Positions 14,971 to 30,879 of a stretch of DNA of 64,000 bases are shown here, in pieces. The notes under the pieces were generated by a model, which was given only the letters and a program-made list of their open reading frames with translations, did no database searches and had not been told where the DNA came from. Location: sequence record MZ574432.2; one strand, written 5' to 3'. Numbering within the stretch: position 1 is the first letter of the stretch; the number at the start of each line of letters is the position of its first letter. The position numbers and the translations under genes are program-made.

Positions 14971-14972
14971 TC

Positions 14973-15116
14973 ATGACCAGCCTGCAACGCGCCGGCTACG
15001 AGGCCCAGCGCGCTGGCGTCAAGTGGTGGCACAACCCGCACCCGTCGGGCTCCCCCGCCGCCTATCAATGGGACGAGGGCCACACCTTCGCCCGCCGTTC
15101 GATCACCCCCGTCTAG
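14973..15116 (+). CDS. Rmf/CrpP-like small protein (47 aa), copy 1
   Basis: GYEAQRAG..NPHP..QWDEG pattern resembles the RMF GY.AG..G..CPY..W..GW pattern. Confidence 0.55.
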   Translation: MTSLQRAGYEAQRAGVKWWHNPHPSGSPAAYQWDEGHTFARRSITPV

Positions 15117-15128
15117 GAAAGGCCACCC

Positions 15129-15425
15129 ATGACCGAAGAACCGATTCGCCTGCGGGCCGAGCCCGCCAACATGACCACCGTCGCCGTGGGCGGGGTGCTG
15201 CTGTACTTCTCATATCTGACCCTGGTGGGCTTCCGCTGCCCGCGCCTGGGGACCGTCGTCAACCCCGAGGGCCGGGCCAAGTCCAAGACCACCGCCGCCC
15301 ACATGACCCACTTTGGCCTCAACGCGCCGGGAACGGGTCAATGCAGCACTGAAGAAGACTTTCAGACCCTGGCCATGGGCGCGGTCATGGGTTCGAGCGG
15401 CCCTGATCACCTGTTGCTCAACTAA
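15129..15425 (+). CDS. hypothetical protein (98 aa), copy 1
   Basis: ORF with SD. Confidence 0.75.
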   Translation: MTEEPIRLRAEPANMTTVAVGGVLLYFSYLTLVGFRCPRLGTVVNPEGRAKSKTTAAHMTHFGLNAPGTGQCSTEEDFQTLAMGAVMGSSGPDHLLLN

Positions 15426-15426
15426 C

Positions 15427-15570
15427 ATGACCAGCCTGCAACGCGCCGGCTACGAGGCCCAGCGCGCTGGCGTCAAGTGGTGGCACAACCCGCACCCGTC
15501 GGGCTCCCCCGCCGCCTATCAATGGGACGAGGGCCACACCTTCGCCCGCCGTTCGATCACCCCCGTCTAG
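15427..15570 (+). CDS. Rmf/CrpP-like small protein, copy 2
   Basis: Identical to 14973-15116. Confidence 0.55.
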   Translation: MTSLQRAGYEAQRAGVKWWHNPHPSGSPAAYQWDEGHTFARRSITPV

Positions 15571-15582
15571 GAAAGGCCACCC

Positions 15583-15879
15583 ATGACCGAAGAACCGATT
15601 CGCCTGCGGGCCGAGCCCGCCAACATGACCACCGTCGCCGTGGGCGGGGTGCTGCTGTACTTCTCATATCTGACCCTGGTGGGCTTCCGCTGCCCGCGCC
15701 TGGGGACCGTCGTCAACCCCGAGGGCCGGGCCAAGTCCAAGACCACCGCCGCCCACATGACCCACTTTGGCCTCAACGCGCCGGGAACGGGTCAATGCAG
15801 CACTGAAGAAGACTTTCAGACCCTGGCCATGGGCGCGGTCATGGGTTCGAGCGGCCCTGATCACCTGTTGCTCAACTAA
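15583..15879 (+). CDS. hypothetical protein (98 aa), copy 2
   Basis: Identical to 15129-15425. Confidence 0.75.
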   Translation: MTEEPIRLRAEPANMTTVAVGGVLLYFSYLTLVGFRCPRLGTVVNPEGRAKSKTTAAHMTHFGLNAPGTGQCSTEEDFQTLAMGAVMGSSGPDHLLLN

Positions 15880-16403: not shown

Positions 16404-16572
16404 AGGGCCTGGAGCGATCCGGGCCTTTTTCGCGCCGGCCAGCGTTAACCTTAACGCGCGCTTAAGGTTAACCCCGCCCGGACCGTTTTTCGTTTTGGCT
16501 GTCGGGCGGGATTTCGTTTTGTCTGTCGAGTGCAAGAAAGCTGTTGACACGCATCGCAGCCCCATGCGACAA
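16404..16572 (+). promoter_or_regulatory. cassette control element
   Basis: Terminator with the same core as that at 13210 (GGGCCTGGAGCGATCCGGGCCTTTT); GTTAACCTTAACGCGCGCTTAAGGTTAAC; promoter motif. Confidence 0.8.
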
Positions 16573-20036: not shown

Positions 20037-20161
20037 GGTTAACGCCGTGTCGGGTTTTTGTAACCTTAACGCCCTGTTAAGGTTAACGAAAAAGGCCCTT
20101 TCCGTTAACCACGAATAATGCGAGAAAGCTGTTGACACGCATCGCAGCCCCATGCGACAAA
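20037..20161 (+). promoter_or_regulatory. cassette control element
   Basis: TAACCTTAACGCCCTGTTAAGGTTAAC; promoter motif. Confidence 0.8.
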
Positions 20162-20688: not shown

Positions 20689-21147
20689 ATGCCCGGACAT
20701 CCCGCCTTCGATCTTGACGAGCGCGAAGCCGCCGCCGTCATTGCCGGCCTGCGCCTGCTGCAACGCATCGGCGTGCCGGTCGAGCTAGAAGACGTCGCCA
20801 CCAACGGCGGCGCCTTCGACGTGCTCGATGACACCGCCATCGACGCGCTCTGCGAGCGCATCAATCTGGACCTGACCACCACGCCGCCGCCCGTGCTGAT
20901 CGAGAGCCGCGAGGAGCCGGTTCGCGTCGAGGACCTCAAGGGCGGCATGATGTGCGACCTTGAGGGCGACATGTTCGCCGACAACGCCGGCCGTTACCCT
21001 GAGTTCGAGTTCGCCTATGCCGTCGTTGTCGAGGTGCAGGTCAACCCGAAGGGCGAGCCGCCTGGAACCGTGATCGTCGAGTTCGACAAGATCACCGTGG
21101 CCTTTCCCATCGGCCACACCCTGCCGACCATCAAGGACCCGCAATAA
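20689..21147 (+). CDS. early hypothetical protein (152 aa)
   Basis: AAGGA SD. Confidence 0.75.
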   Translation: MPGHPAFDLDEREAAAVIAGLRLLQRIGVPVELEDVATNGGAFDVLDDTAIDALCERINLDLTTTPPPVLIESREEPVRVEDLKGGMMCDLEGDMFADNAGRYPEFEFAYAVVVEVQVNPKGEPPGTVIVEFDKITVAFPIGHTLPTIKDPQ

Positions 21148-21149
21148 AA

Positions 21150-21190
21150 CGCAAGAAAGCTGTTGACAGCATAATCAGGCTATGCGAGAA
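21150..21190 (+). promoter_or_regulatory. early promoter motif without a CtrA-like box
   Basis: GCAAGAAAGCTGTTGACAGCAT..TATGCGAG. Confidence 0.75.
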
Positions 21191-21228
21191 AGGATCGTCA
21201 AAGGCGATCCCGCCTCGTGGAGACACCC

Positions 21229-21573
21229 ATGAAACTGGTCAAGTCCAACATCATCGACAACCACCGCATGACGGCGCTGCGCAACTGCATCACCGTCGCC
21301 ATCGAGCGCTTTCAAGAGCACGTCGATGAGATGAAGCCGGCCGCCGAGCAATACGAGGCCGCCGACGACGCGGGCAAGAAGGCCCTGGAAGCGGCCACGC
21401 CCATGGTTCACCCCCGCGTCTATCGCCAGCTTTCCGACCAGTTCGAGGGCCAGATCGAAGAAGCCCGCAAGCTGCTGGACTGGCTGGACGGCGACGCCTA
21501 CCAAGACGCCTCGGGCGAGTTCCCCGAAGGCACCGATTTCGTCGTCGTCGCCGGCCTCGTCCGCGACTACTGA
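21229..21573 (+). CDS. early hypothetical protein (114 aa)
   Basis: Start MKLVKSN after GGAGACACCC. Confidence 0.75.
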   Translation: MKLVKSNIIDNHRMTALRNCITVAIERFQEHVDEMKPAAEQYEAADDAGKKALEAATPMVHPRVYRQLSDQFEGQIEEARKLLDWLDGDAYQDASGEFPEGTDFVVVAGLVRDY

Positions 21574-21581
21574 CCAAGCCA

Positions 21582-21722
21582 AGGCCCGCCTCACCGGCGG
21601 GCCTTTTTCTCGCCAGCCCACGTTAACCTTAACGCCGCGTTAGGGTTAACGGCGGGCCGGTTTTCGTTAACCAAAGAAAATGCAAGAAACCTGTTGACTG
21701 ACATCTTGGTCCTATGCGACAA
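21582..21722 (+). promoter_or_regulatory. cassette control element
   Basis: GGCCCGCC..GGCGGGCC-T5; GTTAACCTTAACGCCGCGTTAGGGTTAAC; promoter motif. Confidence 0.8.
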
Positions 21723-21749
21723 AGGCTCATCACCAACGGGAACGCTCCC

Positions 21750-22148
21750 ATGACCCAAGACCTGACCACCGAAGAACGCAACGCCAAGCGCGCCGAAATG
21801 GCCGATCACTGGCGCGAGCAACTCAAGGTCGCCCAGGCTCGCCTTGACATGACCGTGCTGGTCGGCAAGGGCTTTATCTGCGCCCTGGAACGCGATCAAT
21901 CGATGGCGATCCGCGCCGATGGTCCCGACCGCTATCGCCTGTGGCCGGTGTCGGCGCACCTGACCCACCTCCTCCACTTCACCAAGCTTGACGCCATGCG
22001 GACCGCCGCCCATTGGAACGCGGGCCTCCCCGACGACAAGCAAGACCTGCGAGTGAGCGCCATCCACTACCGCGACGCGCTCAAAACCTTCGTGGAAGTG
22101 GCCAAGTCGCAAATCGCCTGGATCGAAGGCGGCTGCAAGGCGGCCTGA
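21750..22148 (+). CDS. early hypothetical protein (132 aa), copy 1
   Basis: Start MTQDLTTEE. Confidence 0.8.
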   Translation: MTQDLTTEERNAKRAEMADHWREQLKVAQARLDMTVLVGKGFICALERDQSMAIRADGPDRYRLWPVSAHLTHLLHFTKLDAMRTAAHWNAGLPDDKQDLRVSAIHYRDALKTFVEVAKSQIAWIEGGCKAA

Positions 22149-22177
22149 TCTTGACGCCCTCCGGCTCCGGCCGGAGG

Positions 22178-22336
22178 GTTAATTTTTGGCCAGCCTGCAT
22201 TAACCTTAACGCGCAACCGTTCTCAGGTTAACCTTAACGTGAAAACGGTTGCAGGTTAACCTTAACCCCGCCTGCCCAGGCCTTAACCAAACCACGTGAG
22301 AAAACTGTTGACTCGCATCTAGGCCCCATGCGACAA
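22178..22336 (+). promoter_or_regulatory. cassette control element with multiple TTAACCTTAAC motifs
   Basis: Three (A/G)TTAACCTTAAC copies plus promoter motif; repeated at 23607-23765. Confidence 0.75.
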
Positions 22337-22364
22337 GGTGACATCGACAACCGGAGGCCCTTCC

Positions 22365-23021
22365 ATGGCCAGCCCTGAAGACATCGCCACCGTCCAAGCC
22401 GCCGCCGTCTCTTTCGACCTGGAAGCGTGGGAAGCGGAAAAAGGCGAGTATGCCGAGGCTCATTGGCGGTATCTGAACCCCGCCTTTGAAATCGAGACCT
22501 ATTCGCACATGTTCAGCCAAGCCGAACGCGACGCCGCGCGCCGTCTCATCGAAGAATATGAGACCGCCCAGACCGATCATCAAGGCACCTATGTTGACGA
22601 AAGCGCCGCGCTCATCGCCAGCGCCGACGCCTTCACCCGCCAATATATCGCCAGCGCGGTTTGGACCGGCGTCGAGTTGCCCTATGGCGACGACCGCGCC
22701 GACAGCGGCGGCGCCTATGACCTCGAAGAGGATTCGATCATCCCCGCCACGCTGCGCGACATGATCGAAGATTGCGCCACCTTCCAACGCGACAACGCCG
22801 ACACCCTGGCCAAGGCCTATGAGTCGGACGTGTATATTCAAGGCGAGCGCTACAACGCCAGCAACGCGGGGCACGATTTTTGGCTGACCCGCAACGGCCA
22901 TGGCGCGGGCTTTTGGGATCGCGGCCTAGAAGAGGTCGGCGAGGCCCTGACCAAGGCCTGCAAGGCGTTCGGGGAATACTATCTCGCCATGAGCGACAAC
23001 GGCGAAATCTCCAAGATGTGA
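22365..23021 (+). CDS. conserved phage protein (218 aa), copy 1
   Basis: AGHDFWLTRNGHGAGFWDR motif. Confidence 0.8.
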   Translation: MASPEDIATVQAAAVSFDLEAWEAEKGEYAEAHWRYLNPAFEIETYSHMFSQAERDAARRLIEEYETAQTDHQGTYVDESAALIASADAFTRQYIASAVWTGVELPYGDDRADSGGAYDLEEDSIIPATLRDMIEDCATFQRDNADTLAKAYESDVYIQGERYNASNAGHDFWLTRNGHGAGFWDRGLEEVGEALTKACKAFGEYYLAMSDNGEISKM

Positions 23022-23178
23022 CGATCAAGGCCCGCGCTTGACGCGGGCCTTTTTCTGCCCCGTCCGGGTTAACCTTAACGCCGGGCGACTTTCCGTTAAC
23101 CGAAGAAAATGCAAGAAACCTGTTGACTCGCATCTTGGTCCTATGCGACAAAGGCTCATCACCAACGGGAACGCTCCC

Positions 23179-23577
23179 ATGACCCAAGACCTGACCACCG
23201 AAGAACGCAACGCCAAGCGCGCCGAAATGGCCGATCACTGGCGCGAGCAACTCAAGGTCGCCCAGGCTCGCCTTGACATGACCGTGCTGGTCGGCAAGGG
23301 CTTTATCTGCGCCCTGGAACGCGATCAATCGATGGCGATCCGCGCCGATGGTCCCGACCGCTATCGCCTGTGGCCGGTGTCGGCGCACCTGACCCACCTC
23401 CTCCACTTCACCAAGCTTGACGCCATGCGGACCGCCGCCCATTGGAACGCGGGCCTCCCCGACGACAAGCAAGACCTGCGAGTGAGCGCCATCCACTACC
23501 GCGACGCGCTCAAAACCTTCGTGGAAGTGGCCAAGTCGCAAATCGCCTGGATCGAAGGCGGCTGCAAGGCGGCCTGA
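23179..23577 (+). CDS. early hypothetical protein (132 aa), copy 2
   Basis: Identical to 21750-22148. Confidence 0.8.
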   Translation: MTQDLTTEERNAKRAEMADHWREQLKVAQARLDMTVLVGKGFICALERDQSMAIRADGPDRYRLWPVSAHLTHLLHFTKLDAMRTAAHWNAGLPDDKQDLRVSAIHYRDALKTFVEVAKSQIAWIEGGCKAA

Positions 23578-23793
23578 TCTTGACGCCCTCCGGCTCCGGC
23601 CGGAGGGTTAATTTTTGGCCAGCCTGCATTAACCTTAACGCGCAACCGTTCTCAGGTTAACCTTAACGTGAAAACGGTTGCAGGTTAACCTTAACCCCGC
23701 CTGCCCAGGCCTTAACCAAACCACGTGAGAAAACTGTTGACTCGCATCTAGGCCCCATGCGACAAGGTGACATCGACAACCGGAGGCCCTTCC

Positions 23794-24450
23794 ATGGCCA
23801 GCCCTGAAGACATCGCCACCGTCCAAGCCGCCGCCGTCTCTTTCGACCTGGAAGCGTGGGAAGCGGAAAAAGGCGAGTATGCCGAGGCTCATTGGCGGTA
23901 TCTGAACCCCGCCTTTGAAATCGAGACCTATTCGCACATGTTCAGCCAAGCCGAACGCGACGCCGCGCGCCGTCTCATCGAAGAATATGAGACCGCCCAG
24001 ACCGATCATCAAGGCACCTATGTTGACGAAAGCGCCGCGCTCATCGCCAGCGCCGACGCCTTCACCCGCCAATATATCGCCAGCGCGGTTTGGACCGGCG
24101 TCGAGTTGCCCTATGGCGACGACCGCGCCGACAGCGGCGGCGCCTATGACCTCGAAGAGGATTCGATCATCCCCGCCACGCTGCGCGACATGATCGAAGA
24201 TTGCGCCACCTTCCAACGCGACAACGCCGACACCCTGGCCAAGGCCTATGAGTCGGACGTGTATATTCAAGGCGAGCGCTACAACGCCAGCAACGCGGGG
24301 CACGATTTTTGGCTGACCCGCAACGGCCATGGCGCGGGCTTTTGGGATCGCGGCCTAGAAGAGGTCGGCGAGGCCCTGACCAAGGCCTGCAAGGCGTTCG
24401 GGGAATACTATCTCGCCATGAGCGACAACGGCGAAATCTCCAAGATGTGA
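23794..24450 (+). CDS. conserved phage protein (218 aa), copy 2
   Basis: Identical to 22365-23021. Confidence 0.8.
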   Translation: MASPEDIATVQAAAVSFDLEAWEAEKGEYAEAHWRYLNPAFEIETYSHMFSQAERDAARRLIEEYETAQTDHQGTYVDESAALIASADAFTRQYIASAVWTGVELPYGDDRADSGGAYDLEEDSIIPATLRDMIEDCATFQRDNADTLAKAYESDVYIQGERYNASNAGHDFWLTRNGHGAGFWDRGLEEVGEALTKACKAFGEYYLAMSDNGEISKM

Positions 24451-24454
24451 CGAT

Positions 24455-24579
24455 CAAGGCCCGCGCTTGACGCGGGCCTTTTTCTGCCCCGTCCGGGTTA
24501 ACCTTAACGCCGGGCGACTTTCCGTTAACCGAAGAAAATGCAAGAAACCTGTTGACTCGCATCTTCGTTATATGCGAAC
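24455..24579 (+). promoter_or_regulatory. cassette control element
   Basis: GGCCCGCG..CGCGGGCC-T5; GGTTAACCTTAAC; promoter variant TTGACTCGCAT..TATGCGAAC. Confidence 0.75.
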
Positions 24580-24610
24580 TTGACGACATCGGAAATCAAG
24601 GAACGCCGAC

Positions 24611-24985
24611 ATGGCTAAGACCGAAACCGTCGACCTCGCCCTGGTCATGCTCGATGAGAGCAAGGCCGCCAAGGGCGCCCCCCGCGCCTTCACGTTCGGC
24701 GAAGTCCGCGAGGCCTTCACCGACGCGCACGCCTTGACGTTGCTCCAAGCGCGCTTGCGCCAGATCAACGAAAACGAGTGCAACGGCTATCGCGACGAAA
24801 CCGCCGAACGCCTGGACGCTCGCCGCGAGGAGCGCGCTAAGGCCGCCGTCGTCGAGATCGCCAAGCGCTACGGCCTGACCTTCCATTTCAACGGCGATCC
24901 GCGCGGGTCGGCGCTGAAGCTGAAGACGCCTCACACCGGCCGTTATAACGGCTTTGGCGGCCGTGAGGATGGTTGGGCCGTCTAG
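24611..24985 (+). CDS. conserved phage protein (124 aa)
   Basis: ENECNG and NGDPRG motifs. Confidence 0.8.
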   Translation: MAKTETVDLALVMLDESKAAKGAPRAFTFGEVREAFTDAHALTLLQARLRQINENECNGYRDETAERLDARREERAKAAVVEIAKRYGLTFHFNGDPRGSALKLKTPHTGRYNGFGGREDGWAV

Positions 24986-25053
24986 GCCCAACTTGACGCC
25001 GCTCCACCCCCTGTAACGCGTCCCCTTCCACCCCTAGGCCTTGGAGACACACA

Positions 25054-25263
25054 ATGGCCCGCACTGCCGATCACACCACCGCCGACCGTACCCGCGCCCC
25101 TCGCGACCTCGCGCCGTGGGAACTCGACGCCGAACGCCGCCGCGCGCGCAAGGCTTCCAAGTCCTGGCGCGCCGAACGCAAGGGCGTGCGCTCGATGGGC
25201 GACTATGCCCAGGGCGACGACATGCGCACCCTCGCCGATGGGGCCGATTTCTACCCGAACTAG
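25054..25263 (+). CDS. early hypothetical protein (69 aa)
   Basis: GGAG SD. Confidence 0.7.
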   Translation: MARTADHTTADRTRAPRDLAPWELDAERRRARKASKSWRAERKGVRSMGDYAQGDDMRTLADGADFYPN

Positions 25264-25365
25264 GGCGCGCCCTGGCCAGCGAAAAAAAGTGCCGTCAACG
25301 CAAGAAAGGCGTTGACGGCATAATCGCTATATGCGACAAAGGCTCATCGGCAACGGAGACACGCC

Positions 25366-25560
25366 ATGACCTTCCACCACAACCTGATGAGCAAGCTGGA
25401 CGCGGCCCAAATGGCGGGCGAAATGACCTACGCCCAACACGCCGACATGCGCGCCACGCTGCGGGCCTCCAACATGCGCGGTCAAGTCTTCACCTCGATG
25501 GATGAACTGCGCAAGGCCTGCAAGGGCGCCGGTCGCGACTTCCAAGGCCGGTTCGCCTAA
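25366..25560 (+). CDS. gene A (64 aa), copy 1
   Basis: MTFHHNLMSK; GGAG SD. Confidence 0.8.
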   Translation: MTFHHNLMSKLDAAQMAGEMTYAQHADMRATLRASNMRGQVFTSMDELRKACKGAGRDFQGRFA

Positions 25561-25580
25561 GACCCCCTCCCCTGAGAGGC

Positions 25581-25766
25581 CCGCCCTAGAGGCGGGCTTT
25601 TTCTTGGCCGTTAGCCTCTCGTTAAGGTTAATCCCCAGGCCCTCTGGGGTTAACCTTAACGCGGCGTTAAGGTTAACCCCGGCGGCCCAGGCCTTAACCA
25701 TGGCAAGGAAAAAAGATCGCTTTCCTGCGAGAAAGCTGTTGACCGCATAAAGGCAATATGCGACAA
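25581..25766 (+). promoter_or_regulatory. terminator + CtrA-like boxes + promoter (recurs in each 885-bp unit)
   Basis: GCCCGCC..GGCGGGC-T5; perfect GGGGTTAACCTTAAC-GCGGC-GTTAAGGTTAACCCC palindrome; promoter motif. Confidence 0.85.
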
Positions 25767-25790
25767 AGGGTCATCAACGGAGCTAGTCCA

Positions 25791-25961
25791 ATGTCCTTCC
25801 GCCTCGCCCTTACCGAAGACGCCCGCTTCACCGCCGCCCGTGGCGCGGTCCGCACCGTCCGCGAGCAAGCCCGCCCGGCGCCGCACAAGGACATTGACGG
25901 CAAGGCCCTGCTGGCGCCCGCCTCGGCGCTGGACCGCATCCGCGCCGTTCTCGGGAACTGA
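25791..25961 (+). CDS. gene B (56 aa), copy 1
   Basis: Start MSFRLAL after GGAG. Confidence 0.7.
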   Translation: MSFRLALTEDARFTAARGAVRTVREQARPAPHKDIDGKALLAPASALDRIRAVLGN

Positions 25962-25964
25962 GTC

Positions 25965-26156
25965 ATGAAGGTCATCGCGCACTATGCCAACGGCCTGCAA
26001 CGGGTCATCCCCTGCGAGACCTCGCAAGAGGCTGTGGCCGCGATCAAGGCGGCTCTGACCTATGATCGCGCCGCCAAGTTCACGCTTGACAAGCGCCTTG
26101 CCTCGGCGATCCCGACCCGCGCCGCCTCCGAACGGGTTTGGCTGTTGAGCGCGTGA
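25965..26156 (+). CDS. gene C (63 aa), copy 1
   Basis: ORF directly after gene B. Confidence 0.7.
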   Translation: MKVIAHYANGLQRVIPCETSQEAVAAIKAALTYDRAAKFTLDKRLASAIPTRAASERVWLLSA

Positions 26157-26250
26157 GGGCGATCGAAAAAAGATCGCCTCACCGCAAAAAACCTGTTGAC
26201 TCGCATAAGGCCCCTATGCGATAAAAGGTCATCGGCAACGGAGACACGCC

Positions 26251-26445
26251 ATGACCTTCCACCACAACCTGATGAGCAAGCTGGACGCGGCCCAAATGGC
26301 GGGCGAAATGACCTACGCCCAACACGCCGACATGCGCGCCACGCTGCGGGCCTCCAACATGCGCGGTCAAGTCTTCACCTCGATGGATGAACTGCGCAAG
26401 GCCTGCAAGGGCGCCGGTCGCGACTTCCAAGGCCGGTTCGCCTAA
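26251..26445 (+). CDS. gene A, copy 2
   Basis: Identical translation. Confidence 0.8.
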   Translation: MTFHHNLMSKLDAAQMAGEMTYAQHADMRATLRASNMRGQVFTSMDELRKACKGAGRDFQGRFA

Positions 26446-26674
26446 GACCCCTCCCCTGAGAGGCCCGCCCTAGAGGCGGGCTTTTTCTTGGCCGTTAGCC
26501 TCTCGTTAAGGTTAATCCCCAGGCCCTCTGGGGTTAACCTTAACGCGGCGTTAAGGTTAACCCCGGCGGCCCAGGCCTTAACCATGGCAAGGAAAAAAGA
26601 TCGCTTTCCTGCGAGAAAGCTGTTGACCGCATAAAGGCAATATGCGACAAAGGGTCATCAACGGAGCTAGTCCA

Positions 26675-26845
26675 ATGTCCTTCCGCCTCGCCCTTACCGA
26701 AGACGCCCGCTTCACCGCCGCCCGTGGCGCGGTCCGCACCGTCCGCGAGCAAGCCCGCCCGGCGCCGCACAAGGACATTGACGGCAAGGCCCTGCTGGCG
26801 CCCGCCTCGGCGCTGGACCGCATCCGCGCCGTTCTCGGGAACTGA
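26675..26845 (+). CDS. gene B, copy 2
   Basis: Identical translation. Confidence 0.7.
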   Translation: MSFRLALTEDARFTAARGAVRTVREQARPAPHKDIDGKALLAPASALDRIRAVLGN

Positions 26846-26848
26846 GTC

Positions 26849-27040
26849 ATGAAGGTCATCGCGCACTATGCCAACGGCCTGCAACGGGTCATCCCCTGCG
26901 AGACCTCGCAAGAGGCTGTGGCCGCGATCAAGGCGGCTCTGACCTATGATCGCGCCGCCAAGTTCACGCTTGACAAGCGCCTTGCCTCGGCGATCCCGAC
27001 CCGCGCCGCCTCCGAACGGGTTTGGCTGTTGAGCGCGTGA
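26849..27040 (+). CDS. gene C, copy 2
   Basis: Identical translation. Confidence 0.7.
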   Translation: MKVIAHYANGLQRVIPCETSQEAVAAIKAALTYDRAAKFTLDKRLASAIPTRAASERVWLLSA

Positions 27041-27134
27041 GGGCGATCGAAAAAAGATCGCCTCACCGCAAAAAACCTGTTGACTCGCATAAGGCCCCTA
27101 TGCGATAAAAGGTCATCGGCAACGGAGACACGCC

Positions 27135-27329
27135 ATGACCTTCCACCACAACCTGATGAGCAAGCTGGACGCGGCCCAAATGGCGGGCGAAATGACCTAC
27201 GCCCAACACGCCGACATGCGCGCCACGCTGCGGGCCTCCAACATGCGCGGTCAAGTCTTCACCTCGATGGATGAACTGCGCAAGGCCTGCAAGGGCGCCG
27301 GTCGCGACTTCCAAGGCCGGTTCGCCTAA
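27135..27329 (+). CDS. gene A, copy 3
   Basis: Identical translation. Confidence 0.8.
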   Translation: MTFHHNLMSKLDAAQMAGEMTYAQHADMRATLRASNMRGQVFTSMDELRKACKGAGRDFQGRFA

Positions 27330-27559
27330 GACCCCCTCCCCTGAGAGGCCCGCCCTAGAGGCGGGCTTTTTCTTGGCCGTTAGCCTCTCGTTAAGGTTAA
27401 TCCCCAGGCCCTCTGGGGTTAACCTTAACGCGGCGTTAAGGTTAACCCCGGCGGCCCAGGCCTTAACCATGGCAAGGAAAAAAGATCGCTTTCCTGCGAG
27501 AAAGCTGTTGACCGCATAAAGGCAATATGCGACAAAGGGTCATCAACGGAGCTAGTCCA

Positions 27560-27730
27560 ATGTCCTTCCGCCTCGCCCTTACCGAAGACGCCCGCTTCAC
27601 CGCCGCCCGTGGCGCGGTCCGCACCGTCCGCGAGCAAGCCCGCCCGGCGCCGCACAAGGACATTGACGGCAAGGCCCTGCTGGCGCCCGCCTCGGCGCTG
27701 GACCGCATCCGCGCCGTTCTCGGGAACTGA
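27560..27730 (+). CDS. gene B, copy 3
   Basis: Identical translation. Confidence 0.7.
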   Translation: MSFRLALTEDARFTAARGAVRTVREQARPAPHKDIDGKALLAPASALDRIRAVLGN

Positions 27731-27733
27731 GTC

Positions 27734-27925
27734 ATGAAGGTCATCGCGCACTATGCCAACGGCCTGCAACGGGTCATCCCCTGCGAGACCTCGCAAGAGG
27801 CTGTGGCCGCGATCAAGGCGGCTCTGACCTATGATCGCGCCGCCAAGTTCACGCTTGACAAGCGCCTTGCCTCGGCGATCCCGACCCGCGCCGCCTCCGA
27901 ACGGGTTTGGCTGTTGAGCGCGTGA
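27734..27925 (+). CDS. gene C, copy 3
   Basis: Identical translation. Confidence 0.7.
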   Translation: MKVIAHYANGLQRVIPCETSQEAVAAIKAALTYDRAAKFTLDKRLASAIPTRAASERVWLLSA

Positions 27926-28019
27926 GGGCGATCGAAAAAAGATCGCCTCACCGCAAAAAACCTGTTGACTCGCATAAGGCCCCTATGCGATAAAAGGTCA
28001 TCGGCAACGGAGACACGCC

Positions 28020-28214
28020 ATGACCTTCCACCACAACCTGATGAGCAAGCTGGACGCGGCCCAAATGGCGGGCGAAATGACCTACGCCCAACACGCCGAC
28101 ATGCGCGCCACGCTGCGGGCCTCCAACATGCGCGGTCAAGTCTTCACCTCGATGGATGAACTGCGCAAGGCCTGCAAGGGCGCCGGTCGCGACTTCCAAG
28201 GCCGGTTCGCCTAA
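28020..28214 (+). CDS. gene A, copy 4
   Basis: Identical translation. Confidence 0.8.
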   Translation: MTFHHNLMSKLDAAQMAGEMTYAQHADMRATLRASNMRGQVFTSMDELRKACKGAGRDFQGRFA

Positions 28215-28444
28215 GACCCCCTCCCCTGAGAGGCCCGCCCTAGAGGCGGGCTTTTTCTTGGCCGTTAGCCTCTCGTTAAGGTTAATCCCCAGGCCCTCTG
28301 GGGTTAACCTTAACGCGGCGTTAAGGTTAACCCCGGCGGCCCAGGCCTTAACCATGGCAAGGAAAAAAGATCGCTTTCCTGCGAGAAAGCTGTTGACCGC
28401 ATAAAGGCAATATGCGACAAAGGGTCATCAACGGAGCTAGTCCA

Positions 28445-28615
28445 ATGTCCTTCCGCCTCGCCCTTACCGAAGACGCCCGCTTCACCGCCGCCCGTGGCGC
28501 GGTCCGCACCGTCCGCGAGCAAGCCCGCCCGGCGCCGCACAAGGACATTGACGGCAAGGCCCTGCTGGCGCCCGCCTCGGCGCTGGACCGCATCCGCGCC
28601 GTTCTCGGGAACTGA
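28445..28615 (+). CDS. gene B, copy 4
   Basis: Identical translation. Confidence 0.7.
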   Translation: MSFRLALTEDARFTAARGAVRTVREQARPAPHKDIDGKALLAPASALDRIRAVLGN

Positions 28616-28618
28616 GTC

Positions 28619-28810
28619 ATGAAGGTCATCGCGCACTATGCCAACGGCCTGCAACGGGTCATCCCCTGCGAGACCTCGCAAGAGGCTGTGGCCGCGATCA
28701 AGGCGGCTCTGACCTATGATCGCGCCGCCAAGTTCACGCTTGACAAGCGCCTTGCCTCGGCGATCCCGACCCGCGCCGCCTCCGAACGGGTTTGGCTGTT
28801 GAGCGCGTGA
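28619..28810 (+). CDS. gene C, copy 4
   Basis: Identical translation. Confidence 0.7.
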   Translation: MKVIAHYANGLQRVIPCETSQEAVAAIKAALTYDRAAKFTLDKRLASAIPTRAASERVWLLSA

Positions 28811-28904
28811 GGGCGATCGAAAAAAGATCGCCTCACCGCAAAAAACCTGTTGACTCGCATAAGGCCCCTATGCGATAAAAGGTCATCGGCAACGGAGACA
28901 CGCC

Positions 28905-29099
28905 ATGACCTTCCACCACAACCTGATGAGCAAGCTGGACGCGGCCCAAATGGCGGGCGAAATGACCTACGCCCAACACGCCGACATGCGCGCCACGCTG
29001 CGGGCCTCCAACATGCGCGGTCAAGTCTTCACCTCGATGGATGAACTGCGCAAGGCCTGCAAGGGCGCCGGTCGCGACTTCCAAGGCCGGTTCGCCTAA
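28905..29099 (+). CDS. gene A, copy 5
   Basis: Identical translation. Confidence 0.8.
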   Translation: MTFHHNLMSKLDAAQMAGEMTYAQHADMRATLRASNMRGQVFTSMDELRKACKGAGRDFQGRFA

Positions 29100-29329
29100 G
29101 ACCCCCTCCCCTGAGAGGCCCGCCCTAGAGGCGGGCTTTTTCTTGGCCGTTAGCCTCTCGTTAAGGTTAATCCCCAGGCCCTCTGGGGTTAACCTTAACG
29201 CGGCGTTAAGGTTAACCCCGGCGGCCCAGGCCTTAACCATGGCAAGGAAAAAAGATCGCTTTCCTGCGAGAAAGCTGTTGACCGCATAAAGGCAATATGC
29301 GACAAAGGGTCATCAACGGAGCTAGTCCA

Positions 29330-29500
29330 ATGTCCTTCCGCCTCGCCCTTACCGAAGACGCCCGCTTCACCGCCGCCCGTGGCGCGGTCCGCACCGTCCG
29401 CGAGCAAGCCCGCCCGGCGCCGCACAAGGACATTGACGGCAAGGCCCTGCTGGCGCCCGCCTCGGCGCTGGACCGCATCCGCGCCGTTCTCGGGAACTGA
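29330..29500 (+). CDS. gene B, copy 5
   Basis: Identical translation. Confidence 0.7.
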   Translation: MSFRLALTEDARFTAARGAVRTVREQARPAPHKDIDGKALLAPASALDRIRAVLGN

Positions 29501-29503
29501 GTC

Positions 29504-29695
29504 ATGAAGGTCATCGCGCACTATGCCAACGGCCTGCAACGGGTCATCCCCTGCGAGACCTCGCAAGAGGCTGTGGCCGCGATCAAGGCGGCTCTGACCT
29601 ATGATCGCGCCGCCAAGTTCACGCTTGACAAGCGCCTTGCCTCGGCGATCCCGACCCGCGCCGCCTCCGAACGGGTTTGGCTGTTGAGCGCGTGA
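29504..29695 (+). CDS. gene C, copy 5
   Basis: Identical translation. Confidence 0.7.
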   Translation: MKVIAHYANGLQRVIPCETSQEAVAAIKAALTYDRAAKFTLDKRLASAIPTRAASERVWLLSA

Positions 29696-29789
29696 GGGCG
29701 ATCGAAAAAAGATCGCCTCACCGCAAAAAACCTGTTGACTCGCATAAGGCCCCTATGCGATAAAAGGTCATCGGCAACGGAGACACGCC

Positions 29790-29984
29790 ATGACCTTCCA
29801 CCACACCATGATGAGCAAGCTGGACGCGGCGATGATGTCGGGCGAACTGACCTACGCGCAACACAGCGACATGCGCGCGGCCCTCCGCGCCGCCAACATG
29901 AGCGGCCAAGTCTTCACCTCGATGAACGAGCTTCGCGCCGCTTGCAAGGGCGCGGGTCGCGACTTCCAAGGCCGGTTCGCTTAA
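29790..29984 (+). CDS. gene A' (64 aa), diverged paralogue of gene A
   Basis: MTFHHTMMSKLDAAMMSGELT.. versus MTFHHNLMSKLDAAQMAGEMT.. Confidence 0.8.
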   Translation: MTFHHTMMSKLDAAMMSGELTYAQHSDMRAALRAANMSGQVFTSMNELRAACKGAGRDFQGRFA

Positions 29985-30008
29985 GAGCCGGCAACCTTAC
30001 TGACCAGA

Positions 30009-30034
30009 GCCCGCCCTTCGAGGCGGGCTTTTTC
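30009..30034 (+). terminator. intrinsic terminator ending the early array
   Basis: AGCCCGCC-CTTCGA-GGCGGGCT-TTTT. Confidence 0.8.
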
Positions 30035-30039
30035 GTGCG

Positions 30040-30540
30040 CGCCGCTAAGGGAGGCTCCAAGGCCGGCGCCCAGGCCGGTATGACCATAAGAAGGTTCCAA
30101 GAAAGTATGGCCCTACCCAAAGGGTCCAGGGACCCAAGGCCGGGGTTTGTTGCATTTCTGCAACAGGCCCCTCAGGCGCCTCTGAATCACATTGAAAAAT
30201 CCAGATACCAAAGGTCTCTGAAAATCGAAGGCCCTGTTTTTCCGGCCGGCGATCGCCTAAATCCAGGACCCCTGTCTCTAAAAATTTTATAAAAAATTCA
30301 AGCACTTGGAAAGGGGTCCCTGTTTTCCGGCAGGGTAAAAATAATTCTCAAGTACCACTTCTAAAAATTTTTTATAAAAATGCAGCTTTAGGTAAAGTAC
30401 CCCTATAAGTTGCATATCCGGCCATTTGCCGGACATTTGCCGGACATGTCCAGCGCGCACCAGTATCAATGAATTCAAAGGCTTAGGTGAAAAGCTGGAC
30501 ATTTGCCGGACATCATCCGGCCAAATCCGGCCAGAGCCCC
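30040..30540. other. AT-rich non-coding boundary with short repeats
   Basis: A/T tracts TCTAAAAATTTT..ATAAAAA twice, CCCTGTTTTCCGGC twice, GGACATTTGCC repeats. Confidence 0.65.
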
Positions 30541-30546
30541 ACAACC

Positions 30547-30879
30547 TTAGCGGATGACACCCGAGGTCATCAGGTCCTGGCAGGCGTCTTCGACCGGCGG
30601 CGCGGCGGTATAGGCCTGGGTGTGATCGCGCATCGACAGCGCCGGCAGGGCGTCCAGATAGAGGCGATTGAACCGCGCGGCCTTGAGCATGTAGTCCTGG
30701 GTGAGCGCCGCGCGCCCGACAGTGCCGGCTGGCGCCTCGCAGACCTTGAGCGCTGCGTCCATCCACTGGCGCTGGGCCAGATTGAGCGCCTCGATCTGGC
30801 GATTGTGACGATCCCACGGCGTGGCCAGTATCACGACCACGACGATGACGCCAAAGAGGATCACGGAAAGGCGCATCAT
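30547..30879 (-). CDS. membrane-anchored hypothetical protein (~110 aa)
   Basis: N-terminal hydrophobic helix; ATGA coupling. Confidence 0.7.
   Translation of the reverse strand: MMRLSVILFGVIVVVVILATPWDRHNRQIEALNLAQRQWMDAALKVCEAPAGTVGRAALTQDYMLKAARFNRLYLDALPALSMRDHTQAYTAAPPVEDACQDLMTSGVIR

Follow-up and report, generated by a model that had tools for sequence, protein, structure and literature searches.

Unequal crossing-over between dispersed direct repeats underlies the rrn, IS and REP duplications of bacteria and the 'genomic accordions' of poxviruses; at the join, the flanking repeats form a chimera, and the products are unstable and able to expand further. Several phage systems also resemble the locus described here. 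T4-type phages carry repeated promoter-early stem-loop (PeSL) cassettes (Arbiol et al. 2010, PMC2839356; Comeau et al. 2014, PMC4122927), and segmental amplification of dmd-tifA has been reported in T4 under toxIN selection (Srikant et al. 2022, PMC9391042). In phages of alphaproteobacteria that target pili or flagella, such as the phiCbK-like phages, the terminal repeats are rich in CtrA boxes, and rearrangements of these direct terminal repeats (DTRs) were followed by site gain and loss (PMC9437464). Our literature search found no paper describing the Caulobacter phage BL47 or its sister phages.

BL47 is a jumbo siphovirus with a 30-kb DTR. We analysed the first 64 kb of its genome (record MZ574432.2; 64,000 nt, hereafter the window) and compared it with six near-identical close relatives (RB23, C1, C2, J4, C3 and BL1), with two more distant relatives as outgroups (CcrSC and CcrBL9) and with two environmental contigs from Logan. 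The features given below lie on the plus strand unless stated otherwise. Inside the DTR, positions 21702-23136 match 23131-24565 base for base, over 1435 bp, with an offset of 1429 and no mismatch, so that the 1429-bp duplication announced in the preliminary description is exact. By sequence identity, the units 21702-23130 and 23131-24559 are identical strings of 1429 bp arranged head-to-tail with no spacer, and the first mismatches beyond the repeat are at 21700-21701 (GA versus CG) and at 23137 (G versus C). Judged on sequence grounds, a perfect repeat of this length cannot have originated by chance.

The duplicated block carries two genes. The first, gp043 (132 aa, 21750-22148, GC3 0.82), recurs at 23179-23577, where GenBank annotates it as gp045; the annotated start of gp045, a TTG at 23038, is probably over-extended through a terminator and a promoter. 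The second, gp044 (218 aa, 22365-23021), belongs by profile and sequence matches to PHROG 1915, a widespread uncharacterised domain, and its second copy is the open reading frame gp046 (23794-24450); the first gene downstream of the duplication is the open reading frame gp047 (24611-24985). Sequence searches of Pfam, PHROGs, PADLOC and the PDB returned no annotated match for gp043 or gp044. The AlphaFold model of gp044 (pLDDT 94.5) had no fold match in the PDB, and its matches in BFVD were uncharacterised proteins throughout. Open reading frames on the minus strand also span the junction; in view of a GC3 of about 0.6, as opposed to 0.76-0.83 for the plus-strand genes, they were not accepted as genes. 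Predicted intrinsic terminators, each a 10-bp GC hairpin followed by a U run, stand after gp042 (21581-21610, dG -21.2, z -3.4), gp043 (22156-22186, from the terminator scan) and gp044 (23027-23056, dG -22, z -4.4).

Three promoter-like cassettes frame the two units: the left one before gp043 (L, 21694-21726, of the form TTGACTGACAT-N9-ATGCGACAAAGG), the right one before gp047 (R, 24552-24584, from the motif scan) and, between the units, a middle one (M, 23123-23155). An inverted pair of GTTAACCTTAAC boxes, which resemble CtrA boxes, was found by motif count upstream of the left cassette (21622-21650, no strand assigned), and gp044 has an internal cassette of its own (22308-22340, also from the motif scan). 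A 26-bp block, AAGAAAATGCAAGAAACCTGTTGACT, which comprises an A-rich upstream element and the -35 sequence TTGACT, is common to L, M and R (21674-21699, 23103-23128 and 24532-24557). The strings of the left, middle and right cassettes read exactly as had been described. The six close relatives preserve both parental forms, ...TGACTGA-CATCTT-GGTTC... for L and ...TGACTCG-CATCTT-CGTTA... for R. In the alignment, the middle cassette of BL47 follows R through the CG and L from GGTCC onwards, with the shared CATCTT in between, and it thus joins the left part of R to the right part of L. The switch is therefore confined to CATCTT (23131-23136, delimited by the mismatches at 21700-21701 and 23137), within the promoter-like motif and beside the 26-bp identity, where the preliminary description had placed it. 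The novel joint accordingly falls inside shared homology, since CATCTT is preceded by the 26-bp identity and two mismatches, and these 26 + 6 identical bases are part of about 85 bp over which L and R are 82-86% identical.

Comparison with single-copy relatives, proposed earlier as a check, gave a consistent picture. The block is single in all eight sequenced relatives and in both environmental contigs, with the order gpA-gpB-gpC; the eight relatives have the same left and right cassettes on either side of it, and in the six close ones the unit is also 1429 bp long. Nineteen substitutions separate BL47 from these six, and 19/19 are present in both BL47 copies, which do not differ from each other at any position. 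The duplication is therefore younger than the split between BL47 and the six relatives and, on the evidence of these alignments, the doubling of the two genes is very recent.

L, M and R belong to a family with the pattern TTGAC-N1-3-CAT-N9-ATGCGACAAAGG, which lies some 30 nt ahead of a start codon. Its 33 occurrences (0.28 expected for the core pattern) are all on the plus strand and inside the DTR, between 2853 and 29759, with none in 30175-64000. Among the 22 distinct cassettes for which the scan picked an annotated start, 20 have a start codon (ATG in most) 28-35 nt after ATGCG, and strong predicted terminators lie just upstream of the cassettes. Their spacer holds a 4-6-bp inverted repeat, GCAT-N9-ATGC. 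TTGAC fits the -35 consensus of Caulobacter RpoD (TTGaCgS, followed by GCtANAWC; PMC8144410), and GCGACAAA, 14-15 nt further downstream, matches 5/7 defined positions of the second element. A scan for E. coli-type promoters found no promoter. From sequence and position, we infer that the cassettes are promoters. The reporter tests of DTR promoters in phiCbK (PMC9437464) were considered as support and set aside, since the cassette there is of a different type and the data are not transferable to BL47. The GTTAACCTTAAC motif occurs 54 times (0.02 expected), with 53 occurrences in the DTR, and TTAA-N7-TTAA sites occur 10 times (0.04 expected), all in the DTR.

Two further tandem expansions are found in BL47 only. 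One is a duplication of 2 x 454 bp (14972-15879), whose junction has no homology and lies away from the promoter cassettes; tandem duplication in this phage can thus take place without homology. The other, detected by repeat analysis, is an array of 884/885-bp units (25283-30034, about 5.4 units), in which the internal units combine the promoter of the 'last' copy with the gene of the 'first'. This topology of right promoter and left gene matches that of the 1429-bp event, and the junction falls in a 38-bp identity, comprising leader and start codon, just downstream of a promoter cassette. Two of the three BL47-only junctions (1429 bp and 885 bp) are thus in or immediately after a cassette, the 454-bp duplication being the exception. 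Against RB23, the DTR differs by the three tandem expansions, and 33.4 kb of adjacent unique sequence align in one block at 99.84% identity. When the 253 pairs among 23 non-redundant cassettes were ranked by longest exact match, the two recombined pairs came third (38 bp) and joint fifth (26 bp); no other top-ranking pair is as closely spaced. The cassette at 16544 was considered as an older hybrid of those at 20132 and 21694, and rejected because the right half that it shares is the family consensus.

We consider it very probable that gp043-gp044 was duplicated by homology-dependent, out-of-register exchange between the L and R cassettes. The substrate would have been a two-gene early block in the DTR, each gene with its promoter-like cassette and terminator, and the partners the directly repeated cassettes 1429 bp apart, before gp043 and gp047. 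Pairing would have involved the approximately 85 bp of 82-86% identity including the 26-bp perfect block, which is close to the minimal homology for efficient recombination in E. coli (about 25 bp), and the change from R-type to L-type would have taken place within CATCTT, a 6-bp part of the promoter spacer. Possible routes are single-strand annealing, template switching and unequal crossing-over, the last between copies of the DTR or sister copies. The hybrid cassette would be the expected by-product of such an exchange, placing the second copy of gp043 behind upstream boxes and a -35 region of R type and behind a spacer, -10 region and leader of L type. The proposal that the promoter motif itself was the recombination site holds insofar as the crossover lies inside a promoter-like motif; the motif acted as a homology patch, not as a special recombination site. 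Likewise, the suggestion that such events create new promoter variants stands as regards sequence, M differing from L by two bases in the core and by the upstream box region, and is qualified by the putative nature of the promoter.

The same structure would result if the assembler, or manual finishing, had made the second copy and the phage were single copy like its relatives. We regard this as improbable. The junction is carried by a single record (an exact look-up of the junction-spanning open reading frame matched the GenBank entry alone), and that record is a revised version (.2). The region is rich in repeats, with three BL47-only tandem repeats that are perfect or near-perfect, as assembly error would also give; one 885-bp unit has a one-base homopolymer indel typical of long-read error, and short-read contigs of relatives end at these cassettes. 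Pattern scans of IMG/VR and JGI metagenome contigs found no match to L-, M- or R-type strings; no close relative is thus represented there, and their silence is uninformative. However, a cycle in a k-mer graph through the shared 26-mer predicts the L-type GA at the junction, where the R-type CG is present, and the switch occurs within a 6-bp identity, too short for an assembler to join. Moreover, the junction has the form of a reciprocal unequal exchange, which the 885-bp array shows independently, and assembly errors usually collapse repeats rather than expand them. We infer that the assembly is correct.

Less probable still is that a phage recombinase targets the palindromic core TCGCAT-N9-ATGCGA, the exchange at CATCTT then being enzymatic rather than driven by homology. 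The crossover interval does coincide with the boundary between the left arm and the spacer of an inverted repeat conserved in 33/33 cassettes. Yet the spacers of L and R are unlike (CTTGGTCCT versus CTTCGTTAT), a difference that would block exchange by a tyrosine recombinase, and CATCTT is not conserved among the other cassettes. Of the remaining BL47 junctions, one is in a leader and start codon and the other at a homology-free site, and no core sequence is common to the three (CATCTT, the 38-bp identity and the homology-free joint). In addition, Pfam, PHROGs and PADLOC searches of the genes in 20.7-25.0 kb and of the amplified small genes gave no match to a recombinase or to any annotated family. 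Finally, an ancient duplication kept in BL47 and deleted from all its relatives is compatible with the structure alone, since deletion by recombination between tandem copies would restore the exact single-copy L...R state, but we give it almost no credence, because the copies are identical and share all 19 sites at which the unit differs from the six relatives, CcrSC, CcrBL9 and the two environmental contigs are single copy, and continuous perfect gene conversion would be needed.

Exchange between cassettes by homology makes BL47 an unusually clean natural case of a jumbo phage whose genes were duplicated by way of short regulatory repeats, with both parental sites present in six sisters. The early-gene terminal repeat of Bertelyvirus is built of modular cassettes of terminator, box and putative promoter; like the PeSLs of T4-like phages, these cassettes serve as substrates for recombination. 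BL47, a harmless phage that grows on the laboratory host Caulobacter CB15/NA1000, could provide a simple system for rates of duplication and collapse and for CtrA-linked promoter variants. A further reading, in our view rather doubtful, regards the Bertelyvirus DTR as a PeSL-like 'accordion' and BL47 as caught in the middle of an adaptive increase in the dosage of three early loci (454 bp x2, 1429 bp x2 and 885 bp x5), which might, for instance, counter a host defence. If so, some 33 cassettes together with DTR-by-DTR recombination, which these phages are thought to use for circularisation or concatemerisation, would make register-shifted exchange frequent, and hybrid cassettes would rewire the CtrA-box input to the extra copies.

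In BL47 as in the PeSL phages, cassettes of about 50-100 bp with a sigma-70-type early promoter (putative in BL47), an upstream part rich in A/T, and elements of the stem-loop or terminator kind (predicted in BL47) are repeated in plastic regions of small ORFans, just before the Shine-Dalgarno sequence and start codon, and neighbouring cassettes recombine to give indels and one chimeric cassette. The sequences are nevertheless unrelated, the host of BL47 is an alphaproteobacterium, and its cassettes have a Caulobacter RpoD-type -35 and also carry GTTAACCTTAAC repeats. PeSL phages are T4-like myoviruses, whereas BL47 is a siphovirus with a 30-kb DTR, and it shows the duplication product where deletions, replacements and mini-circles were reported for PeSLs (PMC2839356, PMC4122927). 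As with dmd-tifA in T4, early genes have been amplified head-to-tail from short homologies flanking the locus, one copy of the homology is left between the repeats, and expression is set by promoter placement (with putative promoters in BL47). The T4 junctions, however, are microhomologies of 6-10 bp as opposed to a regulatory cassette with 26 + 6 bp, and the T4 amplification had a known selection and compensating deletions, whereas the BL47 genome exceeds those of its relatives by about 15 kb, and the 64 kb analysed give no sign of compensation. The DTRs of phiCbK-like phages and BL47 are alike in being crowded with small genes of unknown function, with intergenic boxes of the TTAA-N7-TTAA type, but the phiCbK study was concerned with regulation, not recombination (PMC9437464), and the cassette there, TAACC-TTTTG-TTAAC ... 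CTAGGGT, is unlike that of BL47. With classical unequal crossing-over, BL47 shares the chimeric join and, in the 885-bp array, the further expansion, although its repeats are far shorter than rrn or IS elements; the duplication is a textbook example of this known process and involves no new mechanism.

When the sequence was compared with itself at an offset of 1429 bases, a single uninterrupted run of identity extended from 21702 to 23136, ending at 23137 (G vs C), with a further 26-bp run upstream (21674-21699) followed by two mismatches at 21700-21701 (GA vs CG). The units 21702-23130 and 23131-24559 are the same string, and a repeat of this length cannot be a chance match. At the junction stands a hybrid promoter-like cassette, M (23123-23155, + strand), which is of the type of R, the cassette before gp047 (24552-24584), across its entire upstream region including CG, and of the type of L, the cassette before gp043 (21694-21726), from GGTCC on. 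The switch from R to L is limited to the six bases CATCTT (23131-23136), with R-type sequence upstream and L-type sequence downstream; such a joint is what an unequal exchange should leave when R on one DNA copy recombines with L on another. The two-gene duplication (gp043-gp044, 21702-24565) and the three promoter strings quoted in the preliminary description are all present and correct in every detail, and its crossover at CATCTT beside the 26-bp identity is borne out by the mismatches at 21700-21701 and 23137, which bound the switch to the hexamer.

The record of Caulobacter phage BL47, MZ574432.2 (a Bertelyvirus of the Dolichocephalovirinae, 326,794 bp, host C. vibrioides CB15), matches 21000-25500 at 100% and at the same coordinates by megablast. 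As its direct terminal repeat (DTR) is annotated in GenBank as bases 1-30174, identical at both ends, the duplication lies inside the DTR, amid small + strand genes of unknown function. Comparison with single-copy relatives, suggested at the outset as a check, found the block only once in all eight sequenced relatives: the six same-creek phages RB23, C1, C2, J4, C3 and BL1 (~98.7% identical in this region) and the more distant Bertelyviruses CcrSC and CcrBL9 (~77%), each with one set of a 399-nt, a 657-nt and a 375-nt gene in that order. Two environmental Logan contigs with gp044 homologues (88% and 64%) are also single-copy. The six close relatives retain both parental cassettes, L as ...AAACCTGTTGACTGA-CATCTT-GGTTC... 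and R as ...AAAGCTGTTGACTCG-CATCTT-CGTTA..., and in 6/6 the segment from CATCTT to CATCTT is exactly 1429 bp.

According to self-comparison and comparison with RB23, every large (>400 bp) length difference between these two phages in homologous DTR sequence is a tandem expansion in BL47. Besides the 1429-bp doublet (21702-24559), there is a perfect 2 x 454-bp doublet of two small genes (14972-15879), found only in BL47 and single-copy in seven relatives, whose joint has no shared bases and no cassette, which shows that illegitimate duplication happens too. An 884/885-bp array (25283-30034) of ~5.4 units with three small genes per unit, of which RB23 has 1.4 units, extends nearly to the DTR end at 30174. 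Its internal units are chimeric, joining the ancestral 'last'-copy promoter to the ancestral 'first'-copy leader and gene, with the crossover within a 38-bp identity spanning the leader and first codons, and its topology is that of the 1429-bp duplication. One array unit lacks a single base of a C run near 26448, perhaps through a homopolymer error in sequencing. Since the adjacent 33.4 kb of unique sequence aligns with RB23 as one block (99.84% identity, two small gaps), the DTR is a local hot spot of rearrangement. Divergence from RB23 is ~1% in the DTR (1-30174, 98.9-99.1% identity) against 0.16% in 30613-64000, reflecting either faster evolution of the DTR or a separate history. At the boundary of DTR and unique sequence, 445 bp of non-coding, AT-rich DNA (30168-30612, GC 0.49 vs 0.64) have no counterpart at the equivalent place in the RB23 record, and the RB23 left end has 701 bp without a match in the BL47 window; these differences could mark an origin or packaging region, or ends that were defined differently.

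The proposal that the promoter motif itself was the recombination site stands in the sense that the switch falls inside the cassette, as might also be expected if a site-specific enzyme acted there. Site-specific recombination is nevertheless unlikely, because the remaining cassettes of the non-redundant set do not conserve CATCTT and no core is common to the three BL47 junctions. Among the 253 pairs formed by 23 non-redundant cassettes, the recombined pairs rank third (38 bp) and joint fifth (26 bp) for longest exact match, and they are the nearest neighbours among the top-ranking pairs, at spacings of 885 and 1429 bp; the length of homology together with proximity explains the choice. With these caveats, the initial interpretation is supported. 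It is unlikely that the doublet was created during assembly: the junction is on record in the GenBank entry only, but had the assembly graph been mis-joined at the 26-mer that the cassettes share, the L-type GA would have come next, whereas the actual joint has the R-type CG, the switch lies within 6 bp of identity, a length no assembler uses, and the independent 885-bp array has a like recombinational form.

An old duplication subsequently lost in all relatives is effectively excluded by the 19 positions, at the same sites in 6/6 close relatives, that separate them from the BL47 unit, since both BL47 copies carry 19/19 changes and show no difference from each other, which makes the duplication in BL47 younger than its split from the sister phages. 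With one of the 19, G to C at 23119, found in M and R alike, the exact match of L and R grows from 17 to 26 bp; this change either predates the event, in which case it may have promoted the duplication, or would have spread later by conversion between copies.

A relaxed cassette pattern (TTGAC, 1-3 nt, CAT, 8-11 nt, ATGCG) has 33 matches, exclusively on the + strand and confined to 2853-29759 of the DTR, with none in the next 34 kb; a strict 26-nt pattern occurs at 16 sites against 0.28 expected. The consensus of the 23 non-redundant cassettes consists of an A-rich stretch, GCAAGAAAGCTG, TTGAC, n, GCAT, N9, ATGCGACAAAGG, nTCATC and a GGAG-type ribosome site, and, of 22 cassettes for which the annotated start was the one chosen by the scan, 20 have their start codon 28-35 nt past ATGCG. 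TTGAC fits the -35 of the Caulobacter RpoD consensus (TTGaCgS, with -10 GCtANAWC, as quoted in PMC8144410), and GCGACAAA, 14-15 nt beyond it, agrees with 5/7 defined positions of the -10. An E. coli-type promoter scan, which demands T at the final -10 position, gave no match. From its sequence we infer, on good grounds, that the cassette is a promoter. Just after each of gp042, gp043 and gp044 comes a GC-rich hairpin with a 10-bp stem and a run of U (dG -21 to -23.5 kcal/mol, z -2.7 to -4.4), making each its own terminator-to-terminator unit. All 33 cassettes have, between their -35 and putative -10 elements, an inverted repeat of 4-6 bp, (T)CGCAT-N9-ATGCG(A), which may be the operator of a dimeric regulator or a stem-loop in the style of the PeSL (promoter-early stem-loop) cassettes of T4-type phages; its arms are invariant and offer no covariation to assess. 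A short-read Logan contig (SRR27946880, positions 1-40) from an 88%-identical relative starts exactly within a cassette; repeated cassettes interrupt short-read assemblies.

As the preliminary description held, the event made a new promoter variant, M being R-type upstream and L-type downstream, with a possible effect on expression. The second gp043 is preceded by R-type sequence with one GTTAACCTTAAC box and CCGTTAACC in place of the inverted box pair of L, and the M core is a perfect inverted repeat (TCGCAT-N9-ATGCGA), as in the L cassettes of CcrSC and CcrBL9, where BL47 L has TGACAT; these are candidate sources of altered expression. GenBank gp045 (23038-23577, 179 aa) has a TTG start at 23038, so that its reading frame takes in the terminator of gp044, a box and the hybrid promoter; GC3 is 0.57 in this extension against 0.82 for the gene, and translation probably begins at the ATG at 23179, which corresponds to the start of gp043. 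Because the DTR is present twice, virion DNA holds four gp043-gp044 copies. The family and sequence searches run gave no match for gp043. The product of gp044 (22365-23021) belongs to PHROG 1915 and has a C-terminal domain found in >4800 database proteins, with a nearly invariant AGHDFWLTRNGHGAGFWD stretch and no Pfam family; AlphaFold predicts the protein with confidence (pLDDT 94.5) as mostly helical, and the model has no fold match in the PDB.

The two DTR copies per genome are thought to recombine, circularising or concatemerising the DNA (PMC12195562). With cassettes as direct repeats in a DTR present twice, R could pair out of register with L during this recombination, or during replication or repair by annealing or template switching, and if the paired molecules were then resolved where the homology ends on the right, the duplication and a chimeric cassette would result, the reciprocal product being a deletion or mini-circle. 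Later unequal exchange between full units could lead to array growth, as at the 885-bp locus, and the recombinase might be host RecA or a phage function.

Between terminator and promoter, GTTAACCTTAAC boxes occur at 54 sites (555-29216) against 0.02 expected, 53/54 in the DTR, often in inverted pairs 17 bp apart that form the CtrA-box-like TTAA-N7-TTAA. This density fits what has been published on phiCbK-like phages, CcrSC and CcrBL9 among them, whose DTRs are crowded with intergenic CtrA-binding sites (PMC9437464). The DTR of phiCbK (JX100813, 2300-10000) has another repeated cassette, TAACC-TTTTG-TTAAC ... CTAGGGT, before at least eight genes. The promoters assayed in phiCbK are of that cassette and the reporter data (PMC9437464) are thus not transferable to the BL47 motif; in this one part of the genome the two genera use distinct repeated promoter modules. 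Among known systems the nearest analogue is the PeSLs, repeated early-promoter and stem-loop modules of hyperplastic ORFan regions whose exchange leaves indels and one chimeric PeSL (PMC2839356; PMC4122927). At the level of sequence, BL47 likewise has a repeated promoter-like motif with an associated stem-loop/terminator, concentrated in a plastic region where indels are bounded by cassettes, and would work like a PeSL system; its cassettes, however, are unrelated in sequence, lie within the DTR and are accompanied by CtrA-like boxes, which makes them an analogue rather than a member. T4 also offers well-documented cases in which short flanking homologies gave rise to tandem amplification (PMC9391042). 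On a more ambitious but improbable reading, early genes would form a natural 'accordion' driven by selection for dosage; the BL47 duplication is a fresh and very clean case of a known process.
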